This document shows positions 11,099 to 35,114 of a stretch of 64,000 nt of DNA, piece by piece. Location: sequence record MZ443780.1; one strand, given 5' to 3'. Below the pieces are notes generated by a model. That model was not told the DNA's origin and ran no database searches. It saw only the letters and a program-made list of their open reading frames with translations. The stretch's first letter is position 1. Each line of letters begins with the position of its first letter. The position numbers were made by a program, and so were the translations under genes.

Positions 11099-11443
11099 TT
11101 GATGAATACAATACGCGGATTTGATTGGCTCTTTTACGGAGATGGAACCGATAGCGGCCAACACTCAATTTTAAGTATCGTCGTTGAACAAGCGGCGAAA
11201 TCAATACAGGTGGAAGTAGAACAAGGAAGTGCCGTGCCTGTAATTCAAGCGATTCAGGAAAACGAAGTCCTGTACGCGCAGACGGACGAAGGGCTTTATC
11301 GCGTTCGTTACAGTTGTTCGTTCCGTGGTCTTGACCCGAACTTCTTCCCGCAAGACAAAACGACATTCCGTTTGAAGCTCATCTCGTTTGAGTTTCTTCC
11401 GGGAGTTACTACGCACGATAAGCTGTTGGAGTACGTGCCATGA
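11099..11443 (+). CDS. hypothetical protein
   Basis: 114-aa ORF in operon. Confidence 0.6.
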   Translation: MMNTIRGFDWLFYGDGTDSGQHSILSIVVEQAAKSIQVEVEQGSAVPVIQAIQENEVLYAQTDEGLYRVRYSCSFRGLDPNFFPQDKTTFRLKLISFEFLPGVTTHDKLLEYVP

Positions 11444-12201
11444 TTACTGTGCAGAAAATTGAAGCCCGTTTAAAAAGACTGGACTATACTCGCCCCTCAC
11501 CTAGTCGTGAGATGCTTGAGGGACTTATGAAAGATGGACGCACTCGCATTCTTAGCAAATCAGCTTCGAGTGACCTGTGCAAAGACTCGATGGAATACTT
11601 CGAGTTCTGCCTTTCGCAAGTCGGCTCTTTCTGTACTGCGTCGTACAATGCTGTGGAGATTGGTCTGTCTCTCAACATTCAACCGATTTATATCGCTGCT
11701 GCTATTCACCTGTACGGTAGCGATTGGCAGTTCCGTTTCCTTGAGCTTAAACGTTTCGGTCTGCTTGCTCGTGGTGATTACTCTGTGTGGAAGTCTGCTG
11801 ACGCATGGTTCGGCCTGGGTGAATGTCGTCGTCGCTTAGTACGTGCTGGTGTGACGAACGAAATCTCCAGCGGTCAGTCTGAGCTTCGCATGGCAGTACG
11901 CAAAGGTGAGCTGGACAAGATTCGTGAGATTGCCAAGAAGTTTCCGCATCGCATGATGTCCATTCTCGACGTGAAGCGTGACCCACTGTATAACGATCCT
12001 CGTATTGCGGCATCACGTAAAGCGCGTGAGAAAGCAAAGGCAGAAGCTGCTGCTGCCGGTAAGAAGCTGGCTGAACCTCGTTCGTACTCTGACCTGAGCG
12101 CTGTGTTCAACGGAGCAATCGCGCCTCGTAATACTGATCGTGGGTTTAGCGATTCGTCAGAAACTCGCGGTACGGTGAACGGTCGTCGTTTTCGTGTCTG
12201 A
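11440..12201 (+). CDS. hypothetical protein
   Basis: 253-aa ORF, ATGA overlap. Confidence 0.65.
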   Translation: MITVQKIEARLKRLDYTRPSPSREMLEGLMKDGRTRILSKSASSDLCKDSMEYFEFCLSQVGSFCTASYNAVEIGLSLNIQPIYIAAAIHLYGSDWQFRFLELKRFGLLARGDYSVWKSADAWFGLGECRRRLVRAGVTNEISSGQSELRMAVRKGELDKIREIAKKFPHRMMSILDVKRDPLYNDPRIAASRKAREKAKAEAAAAGKKLAEPRSYSDLSAVFNGAIAPRNTDRGFSDSSETRGTVNGRRFRV

Positions 12202-12251: not shown

Positions 12252-13022
12252 ATGAGCAACATTGATAATACAATGCCTGAGGGCAAGTGGGAGTTCAACG
12301 AGCCTGTTGCTGCTGTGTTTGATAACATGCTGCAAAACTCAATCCCGTCGTATGGCCGTATGCGCGACTTGACCTATCGTCTGGGTCGTCAGTTCGTCAC
12401 GCCCGGTACTGCTATCGTTGACCTCGGAGCTTCTCTGGGTCGTGCTATTGAGCCGTTCTGCAAAGAGTTCGGCGAGTACATCTACGTTCACGCTGCTGAC
12501 CGTCCTGAGCCAGATCGTGAAATCGGTAACATGTACTGCTGCTACGAAGTCGCTCCTGCGATGCTTGAACGCCTGCGTGAAAACGAAGTGCTGAAAGCGG
12601 CCAAAGCGAAAATCAGTAGCGAATCGCTGGTGGACGTTGACACGTTCCGCTTCGACGAACAGGTTGAGTGCTCGCTCATTCTGTCTGTACTCACTCTCCA
12701 GTTCACGCCGATTGAACATCGTCAACACGTCCTTGAGAAAGTCTATGACTCTCTTGCAAAAGGCGGTGCGTTCATTCTCGTTGAGAAGGTTCTCGGTGAC
12801 GACAACTTCCTCGACCGTCTGCTGGTGGACACGTACTATCACATGAAAGGCGACAACGGCTACACGCAAGAATCTATTGCTTGTAAGCGTAAGTCACTCG
12901 AAGGTGTTCTGGTACCTGTCAAAGCTGCATGGAACGAAGAACTGCTGCGCAAAGCGGGTTTCAACCGTGTAGAATGTTTCTACCGCGATCTCAACTTCGC
13001 CGGATGGATCGCAATTAAGTAA
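12252..13022 (+). CDS. cmoA: carboxy-S-adenosyl-L-methionine synthase (CmoA family)
   Basis: Full-length similarity to E. coli CmoA as recalled: W.F.E.VA.VF..M...S.P.Y, VDLGASLG, TLQF, GGAFIL.EK, K..NGY....I..KR..LE.V (Arg corresponding to the Cx-SAM-binding Arg retained), L.KAGF....F...NF. Confidence 0.88.
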   Translation: MSNIDNTMPEGKWEFNEPVAAVFDNMLQNSIPSYGRMRDLTYRLGRQFVTPGTAIVDLGASLGRAIEPFCKEFGEYIYVHAADRPEPDREIGNMYCCYEVAPAMLERLRENEVLKAAKAKISSESLVDVDTFRFDEQVECSLILSVLTLQFTPIEHRQHVLEKVYDSLAKGGAFILVEKVLGDDNFLDRLLVDTYYHMKGDNGYTQESIACKRKSLEGVLVPVKAAWNEELLRKAGFNRVECFYRDLNFAGWIAIK

Positions 13023-13032
13023 GGGAAGTAGC

Positions 13033-14295
13033 ATGAAAGTAAACGGGCGTATCTTAGCAATCGTACCGCACAAGACTCTGGCTGATCGCACGAAGTCTGG
13101 TGTTGGTGCTTACATCGACGGACTCGAAGCGTATGGTTTCTGCGACTTCATCACTGACGGTGAGAACAGTTCCGTAACCAAGAGCTTGTGGTTTAACTAC
13201 GGTGATACCACGCTGAGTGACGGTTATAAAGTGGGGCACATTCAAAGTGAACTGCTTGCTGCTCTTGAGCGTCATCCGTATCGTGCAATCATTTGCAGCA
13301 CATACGAAGCGATTGAGGCTGCTGTCGGTCTGGGCTTGCCAAAGATTATGCCCGTTTACTATCGTTCGCATAACAGCTTCCTGTTGACGCAAGATCTCAA
13401 TGGTCTCGGTGCTGAGAAGATTCACCGTGCTCTACTGCAAGCTGGCGTAACTGGTCTGCGTGTGTTAGCGAACTGTGATTCAACTGCAAACAATCTGGCA
13501 TCACGTTATCCTGTTGCTGCGTCTGTCGCGTACAACTCGTTCAACGTGCCTGACTACAATCCACCAGCAAAGCGCAAGCCGACGCTGTTGATTATCTGTC
13601 GCTACGAAAAGGTTAAGCGCCCTGCGTTTGCTGCTCGTATCGCTGCTGCATCTGGTCTGCCTGTTCGTGTGATGACAGGCAGTGATCGCCAAGTTAAAAG
13701 CTGGCAGAAAGAACTGACCGATGCCGGTGTCAAAGACCATACAGTCGTTAGCGGTATCAGTGGCAAAGAGAAACTTGAGTTCATCGGCGCTTGTACCGTG
13801 GCTCTCTCCTGCGCTGAAATCGAATCGTTCGCTAACGGTGTGCGTGAGTCTGTACCGTACTGCCCAACGTTCATCGTGCAAACATCGAAGTTCGACTGGG
13901 CGAAAGATTACACACGCTTCTGCTCTCTGGACAAACACATCCACGTTCGCACTGTTGACCGTGTGACAGAGCAGGAAGTCACTGAGCTGGGTAATGAGAT
14001 TGCTTACTGGGCTACTACTCGCTACCTGAACAATGCTCAACGTAAAGACTTGATGACCAAGTGGGTTGCTCAAGTCGATAAGGGCTGGGCTGACTTTATG
14101 AAGAATGCCGTTGTTGCTGATGACGGCAAGCCCATGAAAACTGACCTGTCGAAAGAACTCGAACAAAAAGGCGTAGTAGACTGGTCAGAAGTACCTGCGC
14201 TTATGCGTACTGTAAAAGCATTACACAAATGCCATGCTCGTATGGGCCTGACATTCGATGGCACCAAAATCAAAACTAAAGGAAGAAAGAAATGA
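13033..14295 (+). CDS. GT-B (GT4-like) glycosyltransferase
   Basis: ICRYEKVKR (cf. GRL..EKG) and ALSCAEIESFANGVRES (cf. PS..EGFG....EA). Confidence 0.65.
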   Translation: MKVNGRILAIVPHKTLADRTKSGVGAYIDGLEAYGFCDFITDGENSSVTKSLWFNYGDTTLSDGYKVGHIQSELLAALERHPYRAIICSTYEAIEAAVGLGLPKIMPVYYRSHNSFLLTQDLNGLGAEKIHRALLQAGVTGLRVLANCDSTANNLASRYPVAASVAYNSFNVPDYNPPAKRKPTLLIICRYEKVKRPAFAARIAAASGLPVRVMTGSDRQVKSWQKELTDAGVKDHTVVSGISGKEKLEFIGACTVALSCAEIESFANGVRESVPYCPTFIVQTSKFDWAKDYTRFCSLDKHIHVRTVDRVTEQEVTELGNEIAYWATTRYLNNAQRKDLMTKWVAQVDKGWADFMKNAVVADDGKPMKTDLSKELEQKGVVDWSEVPALMRTVKALHKCHARMGLTFDGTKIKTKGRKK

Positions 14296-15326
14296 GCGTG
14301 ATTGGTGATATCTATAACATTCCTCAACCGTATGCGATGTACTGCGGCAATGCCAAAACCAAAGCAATGGCAAAGATTACTGCCGGTATGGTTGAGTGGG
14401 CTCCTGAGAAGGTATGTTGTGTAGTCGAAGACGCTGAACGTTTGTTCGCTGACGTACCGTGTGTTGAAGTGCGCGATCTCGATAAGACCGACGCTGAAAC
14501 TCTGGTTATCGGCTTTGCGCCATTTGGCGGTCAGATTAACGATGACATTGATCGCGTTGTCTGCGAAGCATTAAAGCGCGGTCTGAACGTTGCTGCTGCT
14601 CTGCACGTCAAACTGGCAGACAATCCTAAATACTTCGCGCTCGCTCGTGAGCACGGTGTATCACTGTATGACTTCCGTCATCACCCTGAGCAATATCCTC
14701 TGGGCACTGGTATTCGTCGTGACGGTATTCGCGTTCTGACTGTTGGCACCGACTGCTCCTGCGGTAAGAAATTCACTGCGCTCGCTCTGACCAAGAAGCT
14801 GACCGAGATGAGTCAGAAAGCTGTGTTCTGTGCTACAGGCCAGACAGGCTTCTTGATTAGCGGGCGTGGCATCAACAACGACACTGTGGTTGCTGACTTC
14901 CTTGCTGGTGCTGCTGAGTGGCTTTCACCTGATGACAAAGACGCAATCTATTTGATTGAAGGTCAAGGCGCTATTCGTCACCCTGCGTATACTGGTGGCA
15001 GCATGAGTCTGATTGCTGGCTCGCAACCTGATGCGCTCGTTATGTGTCACACTGTTGGCCGTAACGTCATGATGGGCACTGAGCGCGAGATCAGTATCAC
15101 GGACGAAATCTCTGCTAACCTTGCAGCGGCTGCGATGCACGACTGGTACCCTCGCGTTGTTGGTATCAGTATCAACTTCTGCGAGTCTGGTATGGACAAA
15201 GAACAGCGCAAGAAATATCTGGCGACTATTGAGCGTAACATCGGTTATGTAGCGTTTGATCCGCAAGAAGGCGGCGAAGCGTTTGACCGTGTTGCTACTA
15301 CCATCGCGTTGCTGTCGCGCCCATGA
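14292..15326 (+). CDS. DUF1611-family P-loop protein (DgcN-like)
   Basis: LVIGFAPFGG, G.NVAAALH, VLTVGTDCSCGKKFT, ATGQTG, DTVVADFLAGAAE, IEGQGAIRHPAY, GSQPDALVMCH. Confidence 0.88.
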   Translation: MSVIGDIYNIPQPYAMYCGNAKTKAMAKITAGMVEWAPEKVCCVVEDAERLFADVPCVEVRDLDKTDAETLVIGFAPFGGQINDDIDRVVCEALKRGLNVAAALHVKLADNPKYFALAREHGVSLYDFRHHPEQYPLGTGIRRDGIRVLTVGTDCSCGKKFTALALTKKLTEMSQKAVFCATGQTGFLISGRGINNDTVVADFLAGAAEWLSPDDKDAIYLIEGQGAIRHPAYTGGSMSLIAGSQPDALVMCHTVGRNVMMGTEREISITDEISANLAAAAMHDWYPRVVGISINFCESGMDKEQRKKYLATIERNIGYVAFDPQEGGEAFDRVATTIALLSRP

Positions 15327-16258
15327 TAGTCCTAATAGACAACGCTGCGTTAGCGAGTAATGCAGCGTATTTAAAATCACTCGCACCGACCATGATTCCA
15401 GTTGTGAAAGGTAATTTCTATGGGCATGGTTTAGATTGCGTGACAGCGTTCGCGTCTGACTTTGACGTGCTTGCAGTGCATAACGTCCGAGAGGCATTGA
15501 CGCTGCGTGAGCTTGGGCTTGACCACACGCTGCTGATTCTCGGTGGTACTGACGCGCGTATGTGGAATATAGTTCCGGTATTGAATGCAGCGCAAGCCTC
15601 AACGTATGAAGGCCAGTATGCTGTGTTTGCTGATTGGGGCTGTCGTCGTATCAATGTCAGCCCTGGCCAACTTACCAGTCGCCCAGCTCTCGTTCTCATT
15701 CACTCTGAGGACTACCGTCAGCCTGTGTCTGCGCACACTGCTAACGAGATTGCTGTGCGTTACAACATGCCGCGCTCTCGATTGTCTGTAGGCTCAAGCA
15801 TGAATGCGCTTACACCAGACGCGCCGAAGTTGATGCCGCGTGTTGGTATGGCACTTACCGGTTATAGCAGTGATGAAACTGTTAACGGTAATTTGATCGT
15901 AGCGAAGACAGTGCTTGCTCGCATCTGCGATAAGCTGGATGCTGGTCGAGTATTTGGTTACGGTGCATTAGTGCCTAACAGCGCACACATGTTCCTGTAT
16001 TCGATTGATGTGGGTTATTACGATAACTTATATCAGTCAGAGAACAACACGCCTGTGCATTGCCCTAATGTGCCACACGCTAAGGTCACGTTGCTTACTG
16101 GCGTTGCGCGATCAATCAGCATGAACCATGCCTTCGTATTGTCAGATACTGAGCTACCGTTCGACTCTGAAATTGAATTGCTCGGACCGAACGTTCGCGC
16201 AGATTATCTGGCCAAACTTCACGGAACAACAACTGCGAATATTTTAAGGCTGGGTTAA
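15323..16258 (+). CDS. alr: PLP-dependent alanine-racemase-like enzyme
   Basis: PLP lysine motif VVKGNFYGHG, EALTLRELG, PRVGMALTG, catalytic Tyr in FGYG, VGYYD, SISMN; shortened barrel. Confidence 0.75.
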   Translation: MIVLIDNAALASNAAYLKSLAPTMIPVVKGNFYGHGLDCVTAFASDFDVLAVHNVREALTLRELGLDHTLLILGGTDARMWNIVPVLNAAQASTYEGQYAVFADWGCRRINVSPGQLTSRPALVLIHSEDYRQPVSAHTANEIAVRYNMPRSRLSVGSSMNALTPDAPKLMPRVGMALTGYSSDETVNGNLIVAKTVLARICDKLDAGRVFGYGALVPNSAHMFLYSIDVGYYDNLYQSENNTPVHCPNVPHAKVTLLTGVARSISMNHAFVLSDTELPFDSEIELLGPNVRADYLAKLHGTTTANILRLG

Positions 16259-16260
16259 TC

Positions 16261-17130
16261 ATGGCTAAACACGTTTTGCGTAAGCTGTTTGAACAGCACG
16301 TTAAGCAAGAGGTTAAAGCGGACAAAGTTGCAGTGCTGCTGTCCAGCGGCCTTGACGGACTTGTCAGTGCTCTTGCTGCCCACGACTTAGGAAAGAAGGT
16401 ACATGCCTTTACTTTCCAGATGGGTGACAACGAAAGTTTTGACAGCAAACACGCACGTAAAGTAGCAGAGAAGATGGGCTGGGAGTTCACGCTTGTGAAA
16501 GTTCCTACGTCCGACACTGCTATCGCTCAGGGCTGGCGCACACTTCACGCCAAGTATCGCTGTATCAAAAAGCGTGACTACGAGTGTGCTTACCCTATGG
16601 TGTATTGCTACAAGGCAATCAAAGAAGCAGGTTACAAGTACGTTCTCAGCGGCCTTGTTGCTGACGCTTACTTCTGCTTTGCGCGTAATACCCACATCGC
16701 AAAAATCAGCGGCCCGCATAGCGTACTCGAAAAGTTCGACGAGTATCGCAAAGAGTATTGGGCGCCGTGGTTCAAGAACGGTAAGAAGTCTCTCGGCGTT
16801 GACGGCTATAATCCAAGTGGTATGCTGCAACACGAAATGCTGTGCGACACTTTCGGCCTGACTCACGTTAACCCGTGGCTGTTGAAAAAAGTCCATGACT
16901 ACTTCATCGGTCGTTCGTGGCAAGAACTAAATCAACCCAAGCAGAAAATGCCAATAACAGAAGCCTGGGCTGATCACATCGCTGTGGTAGGGCATCGTCC
17001 TCACCGTGGCTATCAAACAGAAGCTGGAGTACCTGCGTACTTCGAACGCTTACTGGATAATCCTGAGATCAACTTCAACGGTCGCAAGCGTGTTATGGAC
17101 CTTGCGCGTGATTGGTCAACGAGGACTTAA
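16261..17130 (+). CDS. asparagine-synthetase-like ATP-dependent amide ligase lacking glutaminase domain (CmoY-like)
   Basis: PP-loop VAVLLSSGLDG, HAFTF, VLSGLVADAYF (cf. SGEGADELF), NPWL..., K..ITEAW; only 289 aa. Confidence 0.75.
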   Translation: MAKHVLRKLFEQHVKQEVKADKVAVLLSSGLDGLVSALAAHDLGKKVHAFTFQMGDNESFDSKHARKVAEKMGWEFTLVKVPTSDTAIAQGWRTLHAKYRCIKKRDYECAYPMVYCYKAIKEAGYKYVLSGLVADAYFCFARNTHIAKISGPHSVLEKFDEYRKEYWAPWFKNGKKSLGVDGYNPSGMLQHEMLCDTFGLTHVNPWLLKKVHDYFIGRSWQELNQPKQKMPITEAWADHIAVVGHRPHRGYQTEAGVPAYFERLLDNPEINFNGRKRVMDLARDWSTRT

Positions 17131-17131
17131 T

Positions 17132-17752
17132 ATGTTAGTACACATCATTGACGGAAGCGTAGGCGGTAACTATGTATTCCATAATCTGCAAGAGGCTGGC
17201 ATCAACGCGCGTGTTCATGCTCCTAGTGATCCACGTCGCCGCGCAGTAGCAGCAACCTATCCTTCGCTGTCTATGGGATTTACTCCCGAAGAGATTGAGA
17301 AGCATATCGGTAATGTGCTTGGCACGTATCGCGGTCTGTTCTTGATTAGCAGCTATGTTGGTTCGCTGGTGGCTCGCAGTATGATTGACCAGTGTGGTCA
17401 GAGTCATAACATCATCTACTGCGATGATCTCAAGTGCGGGTCTACGCCTGTCGTTGCTTCCTCGATTTCTGTAAATGTCTATCAGAAGCAACGACAACTC
17501 GGACGCATTGCAGGTCGAATCAAACACTTCGACTTCGACCATGAGTTCATTGTAGCTGACAAGGCTGTGCGTTTTGCAGCAGGGTCAGAATTTGATGAGC
17601 ATGGTGCGCGTGAAGAACTGGACGACACGCCCAAGTTCTTATCGAGTCCGTCAATGATTGTTGCTGCACACAAACTCGGTGTGAAGCGCAACGTGTATCA
17701 CAACTACGCTGGTCTGGTGCAAGAGTTCCTTGAAAAGCGCCAGCAGCAATAA
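17132..17752 (+). CDS. degenerate Asp/Glu-racemase-fold-like protein
   Basis: Start re-assigned to ATG 17132 after GAGGA; IIDGSVGG resembles MurI FDSGVGG; catalytic-Cys positions appear to be Ser (LISSY, LSSPS). Confidence 0.35.
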   Translation: MLVHIIDGSVGGNYVFHNLQEAGINARVHAPSDPRRRAVAATYPSLSMGFTPEEIEKHIGNVLGTYRGLFLISSYVGSLVARSMIDQCGQSHNIIYCDDLKCGSTPVVASSISVNVYQKQRQLGRIAGRIKHFDFDHEFIVADKAVRFAAGSEFDEHGAREELDDTPKFLSSPSMIVAAHKLGVKRNVYHNYAGLVQEFLEKRQQQ

Positions 17753-17764
17753 CGCGAGGGTACG

Positions 17765-18028
17765 ATGATCAATCGCTTTCAGTTAAAACGAGTTCCAGTG
17801 ATTGAAGCATGTCAGTGGAACGGCGAGAACATTGATGAGATGAATCAATTTCTCAACGGTAGCGGTTACGTTGTAGGTCGCTATGTTCAGATTGGTGTTA
17901 CAGACCAATTCGGTAAGCCGACTCTTGCAAACGTATCAGTCGGCAACTATGCAGTGAAACACGAAGACGGTAAGTTCGACGCAATCACCGCATCAGAATT
18001 GATGGACCTTTACGTACTGGCGGATTGA
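17765..18028 (+). CDS. hypothetical phage protein
   Basis: IEACQWNGEN motif common in small phage proteins; GAGG SD. Confidence 0.7.
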   Translation: MINRFQLKRVPVIEACQWNGENIDEMNQFLNGSGYVVGRYVQIGVTDQFGKPTLANVSVGNYAVKHEDGKFDAITASELMDLYVLAD

Positions 18029-18035
18029 GGAACAA

Positions 18036-18491
18036 ATGAACCTGTTTTCTATTCTAAAGCAGCAAGTGAAGAAAGCGCTGTCGACCGAAGCTAACCACGA
18101 ACCAGAAATACGTGCGCAGTTCGACTGGCGTTACGCTCTTGAGATCAAAGGGCAGATGTACATTGTAGGCAAGACGGGCGCTAACACCTGCTTCTATATT
18201 GAGCCAGGTACTACCGAGCCTGTTGGTTGTTATCCAGATGCGCTTCTGGAGAAGATTGATCAGTGGGGTGGCAGCAAGTATGTTTCGTTTGCTATCTACT
18301 TCAAACACTTCGATAGCCCTGTCGCTGAGAATATCAAGACAGAAGAACAAGCGCTGAAAGGTAAGCCGAAGACATTTAAGAAAGGTTACTTCATCTGCGG
18401 TGTGACACCGAAAGGCAAGCGTATCAAACTGTATCGCTTGCAGCAAGGTCTCAGCGGTATGCAGTGGGTTGCCGTCGAACCTAAAAAGTAA
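18036..18491 (+). CDS. hypothetical protein
   Basis: GAGGA SD; 151 aa. Confidence 0.7.
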   Translation: MNLFSILKQQVKKALSTEANHEPEIRAQFDWRYALEIKGQMYIVGKTGANTCFYIEPGTTEPVGCYPDALLEKIDQWGGSKYVSFAIYFKHFDSPVAENIKTEEQALKGKPKTFKKGYFICGVTPKGKRIKLYRLQQGLSGMQWVAVEPKK

Positions 18492-18519
18492 TCACGGTCT
18501 GTCCGTGTGAGGAGCAAGT

Positions 18520-18813
18520 ATGATTAGCGACATTACAGTTGGCCACATCTATAAGTCACCAAGCAATAAACCTTTTATTGTTGACTGCATTGCTGCGCAC
18601 GGACAGGATTGCTCATTGCCTATGGTTGTCTATCGTAATCTTGAAGCTACGTTTGACAAACCTGCTGATAGCATTTGGGTAATCCCTGAATCGTTGTTTG
18701 TGATGCAGTTCTCTGAGTACGAATCAGGAGAGCACCATGAGCACAACGAGCTTGTATCATCATCTGGAGTCAAGGGGATTTTCTCCTTCTTTCTATCACT
18801 GTTGGCTAAGTGA
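18520..18813 (+). CDS. DUF1653-like small beta-barrel protein
   Basis: G.IYK......F.V..IA.H......MVVY..L......WV.P...F pattern. Confidence 0.65.
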   Translation: MISDITVGHIYKSPSNKPFIVDCIAAHGQDCSLPMVVYRNLEATFDKPADSIWVIPESLFVMQFSEYESGEHHEHNELVSSSGVKGIFSFFLSLLAK

Positions 18814-19253
18814 TACGCAAATGACTGTGCCGCTGTTTGGCTTTGACAGAGCTATGCGCGGCCTACAGGTCTACACACCAAATGCACCTAAGCATGACGC
18901 TAACCCGAAAGCCTGTCGTTACTTCACGCGAGCATTCGGTGGCAAGCAGTTGGTGTGGGGATCAGAAATTAAACCTGAACGGGTCGACCGTATTCTTAAC
19001 TGAGTCTGTGTTCAAGGCATGTGCGCTACATCGTCTTGGACTCAACGCTTGGTCCGTTCTTGGTTCAGATGTTAATCTACATCTCTATCGTCAGTTGCGT
19101 CTTCTTGGTCTGCGTTTCGTTTGTCTTGGTGACAACGATGCTGCTGGTGAAAAGTTCAGTCAGACATTCGGACTAGGCACGACGAGCAAAGACCTCGATG
19201 AGATGACAGACGAAGAACTTCGCGATCTAACTCTACCATTCTTGAGGAAGTGA
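18737..19253 (+). pseudogene. Toprim (primase-like) protein split by a +1 frameshift near 18966-18968
   Basis: ORF 18737..19003 joined to the frame of 18837..19253 gives ...LVWGSE/LNLNGSTVFLTESVFKAC...LGDNDAAG, i.e. the Toprim TE and DND motifs. Confidence 0.7.
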
Positions 19254-20755: not shown

Positions 20756-21598
20756 ATGACAGTAATCAGCCCCATTCGTTATCAGGGCAATAAGCGTAGC
20801 CTTATCCCTCTTATTCTTGAAAACACACCTGATGTGAAAGACTGCCCGCGTATGGTCGATGTGTTTGGCGGTAGTGCCACCGTGTGCGCGAACATGCCTC
20901 AGAAGTTTCGCGTCTACAACGAGCTTAGTCCTCAGGTGTATGAGATCGTTAAGATGCTTGTCGAGCAAGACCCGAAGAAAACATTGGGTCAAGTCAAGCG
21001 TCTGGTAAAGCACTGGTGCCTGACAAACAGCAACGAAGCGAACTATGACGCGTTTCGAACTGTCGTCCAGAAGAAGCGTACTCCCATACTTCACTACGTT
21101 GCGCACAGACACGCACACTCGAACATGCTGCGCTTTAACCAGCAGGGTGTGTACAACGTAGGCTTCGGCGATCGTGGTCTGATTGGAAAGTTCGAGGAGC
21201 TTGAGCATGAGCTTACGACATTCCACCAGCACATGCAGGGTGTTCACCTGACGAACATGAAGTACGGTAAGTTGTTGGGTAGATTAGGCAATCAACTGGA
21301 TTGCAATACGTTCTGCTACTTCGACCCACCGTATCTGGCAAGTGGCGCGATGCAGTACGGCAAGTGGACTGAATCAAACGAACGTAACCTGCTTGCTACG
21401 CTTGAACAACTCAATCGCTTAGGCGTACCGTGGATGTTGAGCAACGTTACAGAGCACAGGCATTTCTCGAACGACCTGTTAAAGCGTTGGCTAAAGAAAC
21501 ACGCGACGACCGTGCTCTACCCGAACAAAAGCTATGCGATGAACAACGGCCAGAGTGGCTCGCATGGTACTGTTGAAATTCTGGCAATGAACTACTGA
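20756..21598 (+). CDS. dam: D12-class N6-adenine DNA methyltransferase (Dam-like)
   Basis: RYQGNKRSL, VDVFGGSATV, YFDPPY, WMLSN motifs. Confidence 0.9.
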   Translation: MTVISPIRYQGNKRSLIPLILENTPDVKDCPRMVDVFGGSATVCANMPQKFRVYNELSPQVYEIVKMLVEQDPKKTLGQVKRLVKHWCLTNSNEANYDAFRTVVQKKRTPILHYVAHRHAHSNMLRFNQQGVYNVGFGDRGLIGKFEELEHELTTFHQHMQGVHLTNMKYGKLLGRLGNQLDCNTFCYFDPPYLASGAMQYGKWTESNERNLLATLEQLNRLGVPWMLSNVTEHRHFSNDLLKRWLKKHATTVLYPNKSYAMNNGQSGSHGTVEILAMNY

Positions 21599-28859: not shown

Positions 28860-29197
28860 CTACACCAGTAATTCGCTTTGACGAACAGACACGTCAACTG
28901 CTGGCAAAGATCTTCGGCATACATAAGCCGTTCTTTGTTGTGCGTCGTGATACGATCATCTCAGGTGGTGACTTGGGCTTTCGTGTGTATCTGTCGAATG
29001 GCACCAACACTGTTACCGTTCCTCGCGTTAAAGGCCTTGACTTGGGCGACAAGCTCTATCTCGGTGATGACGAGGAAGTTTATGAGTGGCATCCTCATAT
29101 AGGCTGCACGTATATGGCCATTGGCGATAATCAGCCAGAAGCACTCGCATTTGGTCTTCATCCAATCGTTTTTCACAAAGACAGTCGGAACTCTTAA
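28856..29197 (+). CDS. hypothetical protein
   Basis: ATGA overlap; 113 aa. Confidence 0.6.
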   Translation: MTTPVIRFDEQTRQLLAKIFGIHKPFFVVRRDTIISGGDLGFRVYLSNGTNTVTVPRVKGLDLGDKLYLGDDEEVYEWHPHIGCTYMAIGDNQPEALAFGLHPIVFHKDSRNS

Positions 29198-30300
29198 TGG
29201 CAAAGCAAACTCTTGATCTACGCGATCCTAATCAGTACGAACTCTATTCCCTGCATTGTGTTGACGAGCAATACATCAATCTGGGCAACGCTATCATCTC
29301 TCAGGGTACTGATGAGTCAGACCCAGGCCGTACAGAAGATACGTGGCGCACCATTATCGGCTGTGGCTTCCAGTTGTCAAACACGCTGATCGCTTTCCCT
29401 GCGTTAGTCAGTGCTCGTAAGAACTGGCTGGCAGCAGTCGATGAGATGTGCTGGATGTCTCGCGGCGAAACGAATATCAGCTCGCTCAATTCCAAAATCT
29501 GGAATGAGTGGGCAGATGAAGACGGCGAGTGCGGCCCTATCTACGGTCTGATGTGGCGCATGTGGCCTGATATCAAAACGTTCCCGACTATTGAGTCGAT
29601 GAAAGAGCGTCAGATCAGCGATGCAGAAATCGAGCGCATCTCGAAAGAGATCAATCGCATGAAAGCTGCCGGGTACACTGAAACGCAAATGGCTGACGGT
29701 CGTGTGTGCTACGAAGGTACAGTTGACCAGTTCGCTGATGCGCTGCGTCAGGTAATGGCCCGCAGTCGTTCTCGTCGTATTCGCGTTCAGGCGTACAACC
29801 CGTCCTATCTGCACATGCAGGGTCTGCCTCCGTGCCACACCGAGTTCGAGTTCAACGTAACCAAGCCGACGCTGTATGAAATCGCTCAGATGGAAGCGCG
29901 TCAAATGGCACCGGCAGAAGATTCGTTGCACATCGTTGTGACCATGAGATCGAACGATGTGCTCTTGGGCAGGCCATTTAACATCATCGGCTACAGCGCC
30001 ATGCACCAGATGATTGCCAAGTGGGCTGGCTTGAACGTCGGCAGCTTTACGCTCAACACTACCAACACGCACCTGTACACGCATCACTTTGAAGCGTTTG
30101 AAAAGCAGCGTGAGCAGTGGGCAGTTCTCGCAGACAACATTAAGCGCACTGGCGAACCTGTTGTCTATCCTATGCTGGAAATCAGCGACGACATTCTCGG
30201 TCTGACGCCGGAAGAGTTGCTGGACAACGCGAACGCAGAGTGGTTCCAGCTTCTCGATTACGCACCATCACCAGCGGTCAAAGGACGTGTGACGAAATGA
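29197..30300 (+). CDS. thyA: thymidylate synthase
   Basis: IWNEWA, GPIYG..WR, SRR, LPPCH, MRSNDV.LG.PFNI, NTHLY. Confidence 0.93.
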   Translation: MAKQTLDLRDPNQYELYSLHCVDEQYINLGNAIISQGTDESDPGRTEDTWRTIIGCGFQLSNTLIAFPALVSARKNWLAAVDEMCWMSRGETNISSLNSKIWNEWADEDGECGPIYGLMWRMWPDIKTFPTIESMKERQISDAEIERISKEINRMKAAGYTETQMADGRVCYEGTVDQFADALRQVMARSRSRRIRVQAYNPSYLHMQGLPPCHTEFEFNVTKPTLYEIAQMEARQMAPAEDSLHIVVTMRSNDVLLGRPFNIIGYSAMHQMIAKWAGLNVGSFTLNTTNTHLYTHHFEAFEKQREQWAVLADNIKRTGEPVVYPMLEISDDILGLTPEELLDNANAEWFQLLDYAPSPAVKGRVTK

Positions 30301-32278: not shown

Positions 32279-32983
32279 ATGGCAAAAACTGCTACCAAAA
32301 CAAAGGACGGAAAAAAGAAAGGCGAGTTGAAGTTTGATCTGAAAAAACTCAATTCAGTCTCTCAGCTCAAGGGCGCAGAGTACAACCCGCGCTTCATTAC
32401 TGACAGTCGCTTGAAAGCTCTCGAAGGTTCTCTCGGGAGTTTCGGTGATCTGTCTGGTATCGTGTTCAACAACAACATCAAGTCTGGTGTGTTGATCTCA
32501 GGCCACCAGCGTCTGAAATCAATCGACGGTTGGAAAACTCGCATCGAGATTCAGCCGACGACTGACAAGCACGGTACTATCGGTCTGGGCTACATTCATG
32601 CAACGCATCCGAAGAAAGCTGATCGTGTTATCAGCATTCCTCTGCGTGTCGTGAACTGGACTGATAAGAAAGCTGAGTACGCAGCGAACATCGCAGCGAA
32701 CGCCCACGGCGGTGAGTTCGATAACAAGAAGCTCGCCAAGCTGGTTGAGAAACTCGATCTGAATACGATCAAGCCTCAGCTGCTGGGTCTCGACCCGCTT
32801 GAGATTCGTGGTCTGCAAGCCAAGATCAAGATTCAGGCGAACGTCGAAGATACGAAACGTGCTGGCAAGACTACTGGCCAGATGAACGGCAGCACCGGTA
32901 AGTTTAATGAGTACAACCCTGATGATGTGGGTGACACTCTGAACTGCACCTGCCCGCGTTGTGGATTTAAGTTCGAGGGATAA
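32279..32983 (+). CDS. ParB-N-terminal (ParB/Srx-like) domain protein with C-terminal Zn ribbon
   Basis: LK.AEYNPR, G....IVFN, LISGHQRL, NIAAN..GGEFD...L..L; CTCPRCG. Confidence 0.8.
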   Translation: MAKTATKTKDGKKKGELKFDLKKLNSVSQLKGAEYNPRFITDSRLKALEGSLGSFGDLSGIVFNNNIKSGVLISGHQRLKSIDGWKTRIEIQPTTDKHGTIGLGYIHATHPKKADRVISIPLRVVNWTDKKAEYAANIAANAHGGEFDNKKLAKLVEKLDLNTIKPQLLGLDPLEIRGLQAKIKIQANVEDTKRAGKTTGQMNGSTGKFNEYNPDDVGDTLNCTCPRCGFKFEG

Positions 32984-32984
32984 T

Positions 32985-35114
32985 ATGATCATCAAGCCGC
33001 CAACCATGAAGGAAATCAACAAGCTGGCTAAACCCTGGCGTGGTATGAGTTTCTTCGCAGGTTGCGGTGGGTCTTCGACCGGTCACAAGATGGCCGGTAT
33101 CGACATTCTGTTGAGCAACGAGTTTATTGACTCTGCGCGTGAGTCGTATGAAGCAAACCACCCGACAACCAAAGTGCTGCCTCATGATATCCGTCGCTTA
33201 GACCCAAGCAAGCTGTTGCGCTACTGCGGTCTTGCTAAGGGTGAGCTGGATTTGCTTGATGGTAGTCCTCCGTGCTTTACCGAAGACACAATCATCCACA
33301 CTGCTGACGGCATGAAGTTCATTTCTGATATGCACGTCAACGATCTGGCAATGACGAGCGTTGGTGAATACTTTCCTGTGTACGACACTATGGTTCGTCC
33401 GTATGTCGGTACGATGCACAAGATTGAAACGATGCTCGGTAGCAACAAAGCAACGCCAGAGCACCCGTTCTTTGTTCGTCGCTCTCAGGCAGACGGTAGC
33501 TACTCTGAGCCGTTCTGGTGTGATGCGAAAGACGTGCAAGAAGGTGACTTGCTCGGTACGCCGCGCACTACCCCTGACATGGGGATTGACGTGTATCAGG
33601 CTCAGATTGATCAGTTGCCTAAGTTAGTAGCGGACTGGGTGACTTACCCTGAGTTCTGGTGGATGATTGGTCACTGGTGTGATCGTGGCACAATCGAAAC
33701 AGTTAACGGTGTTGACGTCATCTGCTTCGAGTCGCACTCAAGCCTTGAGAACGCGATGATCGAGCAGGCGTTTGATGCGCTTAAAATCAGTAGCCTGAAT
33801 CGTATCGACACGACAACGGCGCAGCGCAAAACATTCCGCACTGTTATCGAAGCAGAGCTGGTGCAGTTCCTGCGTCGATTCGTCAGTCAGGAGCAGAACA
33901 AGTTTTCTCGTCGTCTGCCTGCAATCGTGTTCCATTTGTCAAACGAGTTGAAGCAACAATTCATTCTCGGTTGTGCGGGGCATGACTACGTGACTGCTAT
34001 GGGCACAAGCCTTGCTATCACATCTGATAGTCGCCGCTTCCTGATTGAGCTGAACTACCTGTGTGCGTCTGCTTTCAATCGTCCGCTGTTTGACGGTCTT
34101 ATCTGGGCAGACGTTAACTTCGGTAGTGCGTTAACGCCGCGTGAGCGTAACAGTTCACGAGCGCATATCGGCTTCCTGTTCCTGCAGGATGAAGCGCTGT
34201 TCATGCACGAGTTCTCCGATGAAGACCCGCATCTCTGGGTTGAAGTGATTGAGAACCTCGCGTATCAGGCGACCTGTGACGTGTATAACTTCTCTGTGCA
34301 GACAGACGAGACATACGTTGCAAATAGCATGGTCGTTCACAACTGCAAAGGCTTCTCTACTGCTGGTGTGAAAGAAGAAGGCTGGGGCAAAGAAGTTAAA
34401 TACAGCGACAACAAGTATCAGCAGGTTGATGACCTGTTCGATCAGTATTGCCGTATGCTTCAAGGCATGGAGCCAAAAGTGTTCACTGCGGAAAACGTCA
34501 GCGGCTTAATCAAGGGTACCTCTAAAGGGTACTTTGTCGAAATCATGAAGCACTTCGACAGATTAGGTTATTATGTTCGTGCTCCGATGTTGAATGCTTG
34601 CTGGCTGGGTGTACCGCAATCGCGTGAACGTATCATCTTCATGGGTGTGCGTAAAGACGTTGCCCACGCACTCGGATATAAGTCTGCTCAGACCGCTGTG
34701 CCTGATGTTATCCCGTGCGAGACGCAAGCGTTTCTCGGCGATGCGTTGCCGCACATCATGCGATACAAAACAACGCAGCGTGACCTGATCAAATATCTGC
34801 CTGCCGTTAACGGTCCGATGCCTACGATTACTGCTGCTGATGCGATTGCGTATGAGACTGCGCGATTCTCGTCTGCTGGCTTTATCGAAGACAACAAAGG
34901 TCATCGCCGTAAGCTGACCATTGACGAACTCAAAGTTATCTCTGGACTGCCGTCTGACTATAAGCTGATGGGTGAGTTTGAAGAACAATGGGAACGTCTT
35001 GGTCGTATCTGTGTGCCAGCAATGACACACGCTGCATCTAAGGCTTTCATCGAGCACATTCTTCTGCCGTATGCGAAGAAGCGTAAGAAGAAGCCCGGCG
35101 ATATCTTTAAGTAA
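32985..35114 (+). CDS. C5-cytosine DNA transferase (Dcm fold), intein-containing, probable carboxymethyltransferase (CmoX-like)
   Basis: Motif I SFFAGCGG, II NEF, IV GSPP|CKGFS, VI AENVSGL, VIII QSRERIIF, IX RKLTIDELK, X LGRICVP (Arg in place of Asn); GAGG SD before ATG 32985. Confidence 0.85.
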   Translation: MIIKPPTMKEINKLAKPWRGMSFFAGCGGSSTGHKMAGIDILLSNEFIDSARESYEANHPTTKVLPHDIRRLDPSKLLRYCGLAKGELDLLDGSPPCFTEDTIIHTADGMKFISDMHVNDLAMTSVGEYFPVYDTMVRPYVGTMHKIETMLGSNKATPEHPFFVRRSQADGSYSEPFWCDAKDVQEGDLLGTPRTTPDMGIDVYQAQIDQLPKLVADWVTYPEFWWMIGHWCDRGTIETVNGVDVICFESHSSLENAMIEQAFDALKISSLNRIDTTTAQRKTFRTVIEAELVQFLRRFVSQEQNKFSRRLPAIVFHLSNELKQQFILGCAGHDYVTAMGTSLAITSDSRRFLIELNYLCASAFNRPLFDGLIWADVNFGSALTPRERNSSRAHIGFLFLQDEALFMHEFSDEDPHLWVEVIENLAYQATCDVYNFSVQTDETYVANSMVVHNCKGFSTAGVKEEGWGKEVKYSDNKYQQVDDLFDQYCRMLQGMEPKVFTAENVSGLIKGTSKGYFVEIMKHFDRLGYYVRAPMLNACWLGVPQSRERIIFMGVRKDVAHALGYKSAQTAVPDVIPCETQAFLGDALPHIMRYKTTQRDLIKYLPAVNGPMPTITAADAIAYETARFSSAGFIEDNKGHRRKLTIDELKVISGLPSDYKLMGEFEEQWERLGRICVPAMTHAASKAFIEHILLPYAKKRKKKPGDIFK
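33273..34343 (+). mobile_element. intein (357 aa) with degenerate LAGLIDADG-like region in catalytic PC motif
   Basis: Starts CFTEDT; block B ATPEHPF; WMIGHWCDRG and FILGCAGHD remnants; ends VYNFSV...YVANSMVVHN followed by Cys+1. Confidence 0.92.

Follow-up and report, generated by a model that had tools for sequence, protein, structure and literature searches.

The first 64,000 bases of Erwinia phage pEa_SNUABM_40 (MZ443780.1), an Alexandravirus jumbo phage of 267 kb whose host is the fire-blight bacterium, form the stretch analyzed here (the window), and the question raised by one locus within it, at positions 12252 to 17752, is what its six closely packed plus-strand genes (g1 to g6) make. 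All six are labeled "hypothetical protein" in GenBank, and RefSeq names g1 alone, as a "tRNA methyltransferase". An earlier note on this DNA had proposed that the six genes form an extended pathway for DNA hypermodification through 5-carboxymethylcytosine (5cxmC). Its account of the pathway described in phage S-B43 was accurate: CmoA makes carboxy-S-adenosylmethionine (Cx-SAM), CmoX makes 5cxmC at GC sites, and CmoY ligates glycine with ATP (Yang et al., Nat Commun 2025, PMC12783734). Based on homology and gene context, we consider it likely that the region from 12252 to 18491, together with a ParB-CmoX gene pair at 32279–35114, encodes a system of this CmoA/CmoX/CmoY type, in which a larger adduct would be built on the carboxyl group.

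The successive intergenic gaps from g1 to g6 are +10, −4, −4, +2, and +1 nucleotides (nt), and the operon limits and tight coupling given by the earlier note are correct. After g6, two further small genes follow on the same strand at +12 and +7 nt. The 5.5-kb stretch is 99% identical to six sister Alexandravirus isolates. A scan for promoters and terminators returned counts that match the shuffled expectation. A reading of g1 to g6 as a defense system was ruled out, with zero PADLOC matches among the six genes.

The predicted carboxymethylcytosine core

The first gene, g1 (12252–13022, plus strand, 256 amino acids [aa]), encodes a predicted CmoA-type carboxy-SAM synthase. It matches TIGR00740 over residues 11–256 (E=1e-41), PHROG 4752 (E=3e-80), and, at full length, the Escherichia coli enzyme EcCmoA (PDB 4GEK, E=1e-29). 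The CmoA entries in the PDB span 1e-29 to 4e-25, and the closest non-CmoA methyltransferase there reaches just 2e-7. Identity to the assayed SpCmoA of phage S-B43 is 31%, and in a nine-sequence alignment g1 lies at least as near to EcCmoA as SpCmoA does. The EcCmoA residue that contacts the Cx-SAM carboxylate, Arg199, is matched by Arg213 of g1, in a column that is variable and holds Glu in SpCmoA in the same alignment.

The enzyme expected to use Cx-SAM is encoded at 32985–35114 (plus strand, 709-aa precursor), where the earlier note had pointed to an Arg-substituted C5 transferase. This is confirmed: the best PDB match, extending over three stretches, is SpCmoX (8YF3, E=7e-53), compared with 8e-16 for M.HaeIII, the highest-scoring true methyltransferase, and the exteins share 30–53% identity with SpCmoX. 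Motif X reads ERLGRICVP and is aligned to ERVGRMVPP of 8YF3, with Arg (Arg674, the diagnostic residue, encoded at 35004–35006) replacing the methyltransferase Asn. In SpCmoX, Arg350 contacts the carboxyl group of Cx-SAM, and this enzyme accepts only Cx-SAM (PMC12783734). The two features by which CmoX enzymes have been defined, an SPPC motif and the equivalent of Arg350, are both found in the window enzyme and likewise in the CmoX proteins of Pseudomonas phage PaBG and of the phage loci L016, L021, and L032. Judged by these motifs, 32985–35114 is predicted to encode a CmoX-type cytosine C5-carboxymethyltransferase.

The in-frame intein of this gene was absent from the earlier note. A class-1 intein of 357 aa (33273–34343) separates the N-extein (32985–33272) from the C-extein (34344–35114) exactly at the catalytic Cys of motif IV, between GSPP and CKGFS; therefore, the SPPC motif exists only once protein splicing has occurred. 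Splicing appears plausible because the intein has Cys1, a TxxH block (TPEH), a terminal VVHN, and Cys+1, and it also matches Pfam Intein_splicing (3e-9) and TIGR01443. The intein is kept in 51/51 CmoX genes of the Erwinia/Dickeya/Yersinia jumbo-phage family considered below, at 62–100% identity. The unrelated metagenomic phage L021 has a CmoX intein at the same site, with 23% identity to that of the window, and the CmoX genes of PaBG, L016, L032, and S-B43 are without one. Directly 5' of CmoX is a gene for a ParB-like (ParBc-type) protein (32279–32983, plus strand; PHROG 620, E=3e-32), whose homologues (41–46% identity) adjoin CmoX upstream in L021 and L032 and are found ~1.5 kb 5' of it in L016; at the equivalent place, PaBG carries a gene annotated as ParB-like. 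ParBc proteins often neighbor CmoX genes (PMC12783734).

The third core member is g5 (16261–17130, plus strand, 289 aa), a predicted CmoY-type ATP-dependent amide ligase with a PP-loop. It matches PF00733 (7e-16) at model positions 2–133 only and TIGR01536 at positions 235–369 of 517 only, which is the C-terminal PP-loop half of asparagine synthase; the glutaminase (glutamine amidotransferase) domain is missing. Identity to the characterized SpCmoY is 34% (E=4e-53). The PP-loop SxGxD residues S28, G30, and D32 are invariant across 10 ligases including SpCmoY, with which g5 also has the C-terminal motif RKRVMDLA in common. It represents a distinct subtype (ligase I, LigI) with a 13-residue insertion relative to SpCmoY.

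Whether these three genes belong together can be asked within the phage family that shares the conserved neighbor gene at 11440–12201, which comprises 57 records (48 Erwinia, 8 Dickeya, and 1 Yersinia). Searches with CmoA, the ligase, the C-extein of CmoX, and the intein each give exactly 48 Erwinia records, 2 Dickeya records, and 1 Yersinia record. The distribution is all-or-none: CmoA, ligase, and CmoX are present in 51/57 records and all absent from the remaining 6/57, the JA-type Dickeya phages, and in JA11 the entire block from CmoA through the 151-aa gene described below is missing. The same presence and absence can be read from Table 5 in Day et al. 2018. Co-occurrence had been set beforehand as the test on which the proposal could fall, and the outcome was in its favor, with CmoA, ligase, and Arg-type CmoX together in 51/51 and in 0/6 of the JA-type Dickeya phages. 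As a side observation, gene 267 of Dickeya phage AD1, which encodes a radical SAM protein, shows the same pattern as CmoA, ligase, and transferase, being found in AD1 and Y3 and not in JA11 (Day et al. 2018, Table 5), and could be a further, distantly encoded component of the system.

A use of Cx-SAM away from DNA would also explain a CmoA homologue. The product of g1 might feed the host CmoB for tRNA uridine-5-oxyacetic acid at position 34 (cmo5U34), or a natural product, the C5 enzyme then being an ordinary methyltransferase. The RefSeq label of g1 agrees with this, the host possesses its own CmoB, and g1 scores under the NCBIfam equivalog cut-offs for CmoA (143 versus 193 bits for TIGR00740 and 109 versus 285 bits for NF011995). 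However, the C5 enzyme has Arg in place of Asn, its nearest solved relative is the Cx-SAM-specific SpCmoX by 37 orders of magnitude, and CmoA and CmoX strictly co-occur and, elsewhere, adjoin each other, adjacency to CmoA holding in four other phage types. The earlier note had seen no CmoB in the window, and this observation extends to the entire genome of pEa_SNUABM_40, since the E. coli CmoB query matches no complete phage record (the sole phage match is one 3.4-kb fragment); Cx-SAM therefore has no phage-derived tRNA enzyme to supply. Taken together, we regard use in RNA or small molecules as highly improbable.

Putative tailoring genes and their genomic company

If the core is of the S-B43 kind, what do the three genes between g1 and g5 contribute? 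For g2 (13033–14295, plus strand, 420 aa), no family match was obtained by sequence, Pfam Glycos_transf_1 included; weak matches to that model (PF00534) appear in its relatives P0023 (40% identity to g2) and L035. An AlphaFold2 (AF2) model built with 7 homologues (predicted local distance difference test [pLDDT] 78, predicted template modeling score [pTM] 0.74) gave GlgM, BshA, MshA, WbnH, and the tetrahydrobiopterin (BH4) glucosyltransferase as the best Foldseek matches in the PDB (E ~1e-10). There were 194 PDB fold matches at E<=0.001, and all 50 among the matches listed are glycosyltransferases or relatives with the GT-B fold; a fold search of a viral structure library gave the same GT-B picture. 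E264 and E272, spaced as EX7E, are invariant in the 7 homologues, and EX7E is the hallmark motif of GT4-type glycosyltransferases. With the fold taken from the model, the assignment of g2 as a putative GT-B-fold, GT4-like (retaining-type) glycosyltransferase (GT) holds.

The third gene, g3 (14292–15326, plus strand, 344 aa), encodes a DUF1611/DgcN-like protein. It matches PF17396 (DUF1611_N, 2e-17) and PF07755 (DUF1611, 3e-51), both over the Pfam gathering scores, and over its full length can be aligned to the DgcN model NF041892 (9.5e-92) and to PDB 7XRJ (5e-62). Its architecture is a Rossmann-like N-terminal domain followed by a BioD-like P-loop domain, and the P-loop is retained as GTDCSCGKK, similar to the P-loop in ATP-dependent enzymes of the dethiobiotin synthetase type, which form amides. 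Phylogenetically, the DUF1611 proteins of phages group in a clade separate from the bacterial copies (100/99 support), within which the tree resolves no grouping by the presence of the racemase or the GT.

The fourth gene, g4 (15323–16258, plus strand, 311 aa), encodes an enzyme resembling fold-type III pyridoxal phosphate (PLP) alanine racemases (Alr). It matches PF01168 over its cut-off (4e-14) at model positions 1–80 of 220 only, PF00842 at 0.002 (18 bits versus a cut-off of 25), and alanine racemases in the PDB at E ~1e-7. The protein is ~50 residues shorter than racemases, and its middle part is without a match to the racemase model. Lys29 (VVKGNFYGHG), Arg173 (PRVGMA), and Tyr213 (FGYG) are invariant in 7/7 homologues, and these were matched, with HMMER and by eye, to the PLP-binding Lys, the pyridine-N Arg, and the second-base Tyr in VKANAYGHG, RPG, and GYG. 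Judged by these residues, the identification of g4 as a predicted alanine-racemase-like PLP enzyme holds.

Other phages indicate what these genes belong to. Besides PaBG, loci outside the family were obtained by looking up homologues of g4 and g2 in public assemblies, to which the IMG/VR contig L032 was added. PaBG has the order ParB-CmoX-CmoA-gp307-ligase, in which gp307 is a homologue of the 151-aa protein. In L016 and L114, ParB is followed at some distance by CmoX-DUF1611-Alr-ligase-CmoA-151-aa homologue, and L017 has DUF1611-Alr-ligase. L021 and L022 read ParB-CmoX(intein)-GT-DUF1611-ligase-CmoA-151-aa homologue, L032 reads ParB-CmoX-DUF1611-ligase-CmoA-151-aa homologue, and L115 has GT-DUF1611. 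Finally, L019 reads CmoA-84 aa-GT-DUF1611-Alr-ligase-DAHP synthase-151-aa homologue, and CmoX was not seen within the 21 kb read of this 58-kb contig. Here, 14162–15025 is an N-terminally shortened AroFGH-type 3-deoxy-D-arabino-heptulosonate 7-phosphate (DAHP) synthase (TIGR00034, 180 bits, over the cut-off). DAHP synthase is the entry enzyme of the pathway that leads to prephenate; its location inside a cluster of carboxymethyl (cmo) genes fits the prephenate need of a real Cx-SAM synthase, and it presumably raises the prephenate supply for CmoA.

At least five unrelated phage backbones thus have GT, DUF1611, and Alr inserted either in the interval from CmoX to CmoA or in that from CmoA to the ligase, in the constant order [GT]-DUF1611-[Alr]-ligase, and the reading frames overlap or abut. 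In a search of 5.8e9 proteins, DUF1611 adjoined 7/7 GT homologues and 6/6 racemase homologues; the DUF1611 gene is directly 3' of every g2 homologue found, and g4 homologues are placed between DUF1611 and ligase in every other context read. DUF1611 proteins of the phage clade always have a ligase as neighbor. Among the best 80 metagenomic DUF1611 loci, 78/80 are without any other cmo gene, have <=43% identity, and are evidently bacterial, and the two with >50% identity are both phage clusters. This pattern suggests a hierarchy of dependence, in which GT and Alr would need DUF1611 and phage DUF1611 would need the ligase. The insertion and fixed order in unrelated phages argue that the GT, DUF1611, and racemase-like enzymes are parts of cmo clusters. 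Together with the co-occurrence of the core, this placement means that the earlier proposal of an extended 5cxmC pathway is well supported at the genomic level; the part that did not stand is the sixth gene as a racemase (see below).

The same surroundings bear on a simpler explanation, namely, that only CmoA, CmoX, and the ligase modify DNA, as in S-B43, and that the GT, DUF1611, racemase-like, and g6 proteins serve something unrelated, such as the cell wall, D-amino-acid metabolism, or virion glycosylation. A racemase, a D-amino-acid enzyme, and a glycosyltransferase do look like envelope chemistry, g6 has no counterpart in the clusters of other phages, and two of the cassette types described next represent the system without GT, DUF1611, or racemase. 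On the other hand, the three genes are embedded in this constant order in the cmo clusters of at least five unrelated backbones, and no homologue of the GT, the DUF1611 clade, or the racemase was found in a phage lacking an adjacent cmo-type ligase, where the contig runs past the DUF1611 or racemase gene. We therefore consider a plain amide with unrelated bystanders quite unlikely.

Within the family, comparison of window positions 12252–18500 with the loci L002–L014 (BLAST of all parts) identifies the region 3' of CmoA as a recombination or swap hot-spot. Five cassette types follow CmoA: type A, GT-DUF1611-Alr-ligase I-g6, in pEa_SNUABM_40 and seven others; type B, DUF1611-ligase I-g6, in Alexandra, AD1, and others; type C, GT-DUF1611-ligase I-84 aa; type D, ligase II-g6; and type E, ligase III-2-oxoglutarate (2OG)-Fe(II) oxygenase, with or without g6, the oxygenase being found in Y3 and Yoloswag. 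Hence, DUF1611, GT, racemase, 2OG-Fe(II) oxygenase, and g6 are each variably present, and the hot-spot ligases are of three non-orthologous types (22–26% identity to g5), of which ligase I is found within the family only alongside DUF1611. The DUF1611 proteins of type A are only 57–59% identical to those of types B and C, compared with 82–91% for the flanking genes.

The sixth gene, g6 (17132–17752, plus strand, 206 aa), follows the ligase in most members of the family and is an orphan. The earlier note had identified all six genes; its assignments of g1 to g5 (CmoA, GT-B glycosyltransferase, DUF1611 protein, racemase-like enzyme, and ligase) stood, and that of g6 as Glu-racemase-like was not borne out by any sequence, profile, or fold search. 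Single-sequence and profile searches gave no match in NCBIfam, PHROGs, or PADLOC, nor, at E<=10, in Pfam (11 members) or the PDB, and a profile search of 1.84e9 proteins returned five representative clusters. The AF2 model (17 sequences, pLDDT 47.6) is too poor for a fold assignment, and Foldseek gave none. An Asp/Glu racemase is thus unsupported by any detectable sequence or fold similarity; D7...S74...S172 as an echo of the glutamate racemase motifs DSGxGG/CNT/GCT, with Cys changed to Ser, is a mere impression on which we do not rely. g6 occurs with three ligase types and accompanies the cmo system inside this jumbo-phage family only; type C, Yoloswag, and every metagenomic cluster lack it.

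Of the two small genes downstream, the 87-aa open reading frame (ORF) at 17765–18028 (plus strand, PHROG 36935) is translationally close to g6. It is found in every cmo-positive family member read, is missing in JA11, which lacks the whole block, and has no counterpart in the metagenomic clusters, and its membership in the system is uncertain. The second (18036–18491, plus strand) encodes a 151-aa conserved accessory protein, with homologues (27–44% identity) that lie within the cmo cluster or immediately follow it in PaBG (gp307, flanked by CmoA and ligase), L016, L019, L022, and L032, and without a PDB or Pfam match even when a 9-sequence profile is used. Because it recurs in five unrelated clusters, it is a better candidate for a general component than g6, and it is likely to be one. 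Further downstream, at 18737–19253, two overlapping ORFs lie under a short "DNA primase" annotation, and relatives have the primase-like gene annotated in at least two small pieces (Alexandra gp024/025 and Y3 gp024/025); this gene may be split or frameshifted.

Possible routes to the final base

How could these enzymes act together? By homology to the assayed enzymes, g1 would convert SAM and prephenate to carboxy-SAM, and spliced CmoX would then move the carboxymethyl group onto cytosine C5 in double-stranded DNA at a short sequence motif. Next, g5 would adenylate the new carboxylate and couple an amine; given the similarity of g5 to SpCmoY, which ligates glycine, this amine is most likely an alpha-amino acid. 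The chemistry beyond this point (a D- or acylated amino acid, the sugar, and the order of steps) we infer. The gene order, the phyletic dependence, and the chemistry of its family suggest that the DUF1611 protein requires the ligase step and has a D-amino acid to handle. The ligase product is formally an N-acyl amino acid, the compound class that DgcN makes from D-glutamate, and the optional racemase beside DUF1611 suggests a D-amino acid as its substrate. We prefer a reading in which DUF1611 forms or extends an N-acyl-amino-acid linkage, either adding a second D-residue or serving as the acyl-transfer partner of the ligase; given its P-loop, acyl-CoA-type transfer and ATP-dependent second ligation are both conceivable. 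The racemase-like g4 may be an optional booster supplying the D-amino acid, comparable to the DAHP synthase that would boost prephenate in L019, and cassettes without it could draw on the host pools of D-Ala and D-Glu. Finally, the GT4-type g2, whose model comes closest to enzymes adding sugars to the hydroxyl groups of small acids and alcohols, would transfer a sugar from a nucleoside diphosphate (NDP)-sugar to a hydroxyl of the adduct. In the preferred order, growth occurs on DNA, from 5cxmC to the amino-acid amide, to a DUF1611-dependent D-residue extension, and to the sugar, and host nucleases would be blocked by the resulting adduct, which is expected to be bulky and sequence-specific.

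The same enzymes could instead assemble the amine before it reaches DNA: GT, DUF1611, and racemase would build an unusual amine (e.g., a glycosylated or N-acylated D-amino or diamino acid), which the ligase attaches to 5cxmC in one step. Small molecules are the substrates of all known relatives considered here (free D-Glu for DgcN, free amino acids for alanine racemase, and small acceptors for BshA, MshA, and the BH4 glucosyltransferase), the 13-residue insertion of LigI in the DUF1611-containing clusters of the family fits a bulkier amine, and the dependence of GT and Alr on DUF1611, and of DUF1611 on the ligase, agrees with such a route. However, N-acetylation of the alpha-amine as by DgcN would remove the nucleophile of the ligase unless the substrate has a second amine, LigI retains the C-terminal motif of the glycine ligase SpCmoY, and L032 combines DUF1611 with a different ligase subtype that is without the insertion. 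We consider this route unlikely, although it carries more weight than the plain amide discussed above.

Returning to growth on DNA, several points weigh against it or against the system as a whole. (i) g1 scores below its equivalog cut-offs, as given above, and so does g3, with 307 bits under the 480 set for DgcN in NF041892. (ii) In work by Yu et al. from 2023, DgcN is said to be an acetyl-CoA-dependent N-acetyltransferase of free D-glutamate, which is also its NCBIfam name; a DNA-directed role would be new for this family, and an amino acid attached by the ligase would offer no free alpha-amine for acetylation. (iii) GT4 enzymes usually act on small molecules or non-DNA polymers. (iv) CmoX and the g1-g6 operon are 15 kb apart in this genome. 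(v) The literature searched contains nothing on DNA modification in Alexandravirus. (vi) Sequence does not reveal the order of steps, nor does it distinguish tailoring of DNA from tailoring of the free amine. The final base is probably an amide of an amino acid that bears further decoration and a sugar. The more specific proposal, that virion DNA bears an undescribed base consisting of 5cxmC with a D-amino-acid-containing amide chain and a sugar cap, that DUF1611 is a new class of DNA-tailoring enzyme, and that the hot-spot yields at least five cytosine adducts differing in chemistry among phages that are otherwise nearly identical, is tentative, and we hold it to be possible rather than likely.

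Other nucleotide-related genes in the window were also considered. A thymidylate-synthase homologue at 29197–30300 (367 aa, ~100 residues over the usual length from insertions) lies near a dCMP deaminase gene, has the PCH Cys and the PFNI Asn of the deoxyuridine monophosphate (dUMP) type, and is also found in the cmo-less JA11. A 5-hydroxymethylcytosine (5hmC)-type pathway as the source of a target for the GT was ruled out, since this homologue keeps the dUMP-type PFNI and is found in JA11 as well. Separately, a Dam-family adenine N6-methyltransferase gene at 20756–21598 (TIGR00571, E=4e-29) points to N6-methyladenine (6mA) as a second modification, which the phage DNA probably carries.

Comparison with known systems

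The closest known system is that of S-B43. The window has homologues of all three of its enzymes, and the SPPC motif, the Cx-SAM Arg, the glutaminase-less ligase, the ParB-like neighbor, and the lack of CmoB are shared. By comparison with S-B43, it adds GT4, DUF1611/DgcN-like, and alanine-racemase-like enzymes and two proteins of unassigned fold, and its CmoX has an intein in the catalytic motif and stands 15 kb from CmoA. Since the target-recognition region of the window CmoX cannot be aligned with that of SpCmoX, the GC specificity is not transferable. All defining features that can be read from a sequence place the predicted core in the published CmoA/CmoX/CmoY kind, with g1 and g3 under their equivalog cut-offs.

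The 2025 study lists 5,615 candidate CmoX sequences and several ligase clusters, of which other clusters are predicted to attach other amines (PMC12783734), so further elaboration of 5cxmC would be unsurprising to a specialist. The earlier claim of novelty is accordingly narrowed, as other amines on 5cxmC had already been predicted; what stands is that DUF1611, the glycosyltransferase, and the racemase are not mentioned in a 5cxmC context in PMC12783734, its supplements, or the other literature searched. New here are three tailoring enzymes in a fixed order, a series of cassettes in isolated phages, the intein in the CmoX catalytic motif (51/51), and the recurrent 151-aa protein. The discovery of carboxymethyl as a handle on cytosine dates only from late 2025 (published in December), and the glycine amide is its sole chemically known elaboration. 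The Erwinia phages offer a natural series in one backbone (ligase only, plus DUF1611, plus glycosyltransferase, plus racemase), and nucleoside masses across the sequenced isolates would assign each enzyme a step. If the proposal is true, it would explain the restriction resistance of fire-blight biocontrol phages, and the enzymes would be tools for site-specific functionalization of DNA.

The DgcN/DgcA D-glutamate pathway of marine bacteria resembles the g3-g4 pair in that g3 aligns end to end with 7XRJ and has a partner that interconverts amino-acid enantiomers. In contrast to that pathway, g3 is below the equivalog cut-off and in a separate phage clade, and its context is DNA modification, not catabolism; its partner is a PLP enzyme of the alanine-racemase type, presumably acting on a free amino acid, whereas DgcA is an N-acetyl-D-Glu racemase. 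If the proposal is true, DUF1611 would gain a function beyond D-glutamate catabolism.

More broadly, the predicted system is similar to the glucosyl-5hmC of phage T4 and to the hypermodifications of SP10, ViI, and M6 that derive from 5-hydroxymethyldeoxyuridine (5hmdU), in which a C5 handle on a pyrimidine is decorated with a sugar or an amino acid by variable enzymes, GT-B enzymes being involved. If true, its product could be the first DNA base in which a carboxyl handle bears an amino acid together with a sugar. The difference lies in the handle itself: in those phages it is a hydroxymethyl group introduced at the nucleotide level, whereas the cmo handle would be a carboxyl group placed after replication by a methyltransferase homologue with Cx-SAM.

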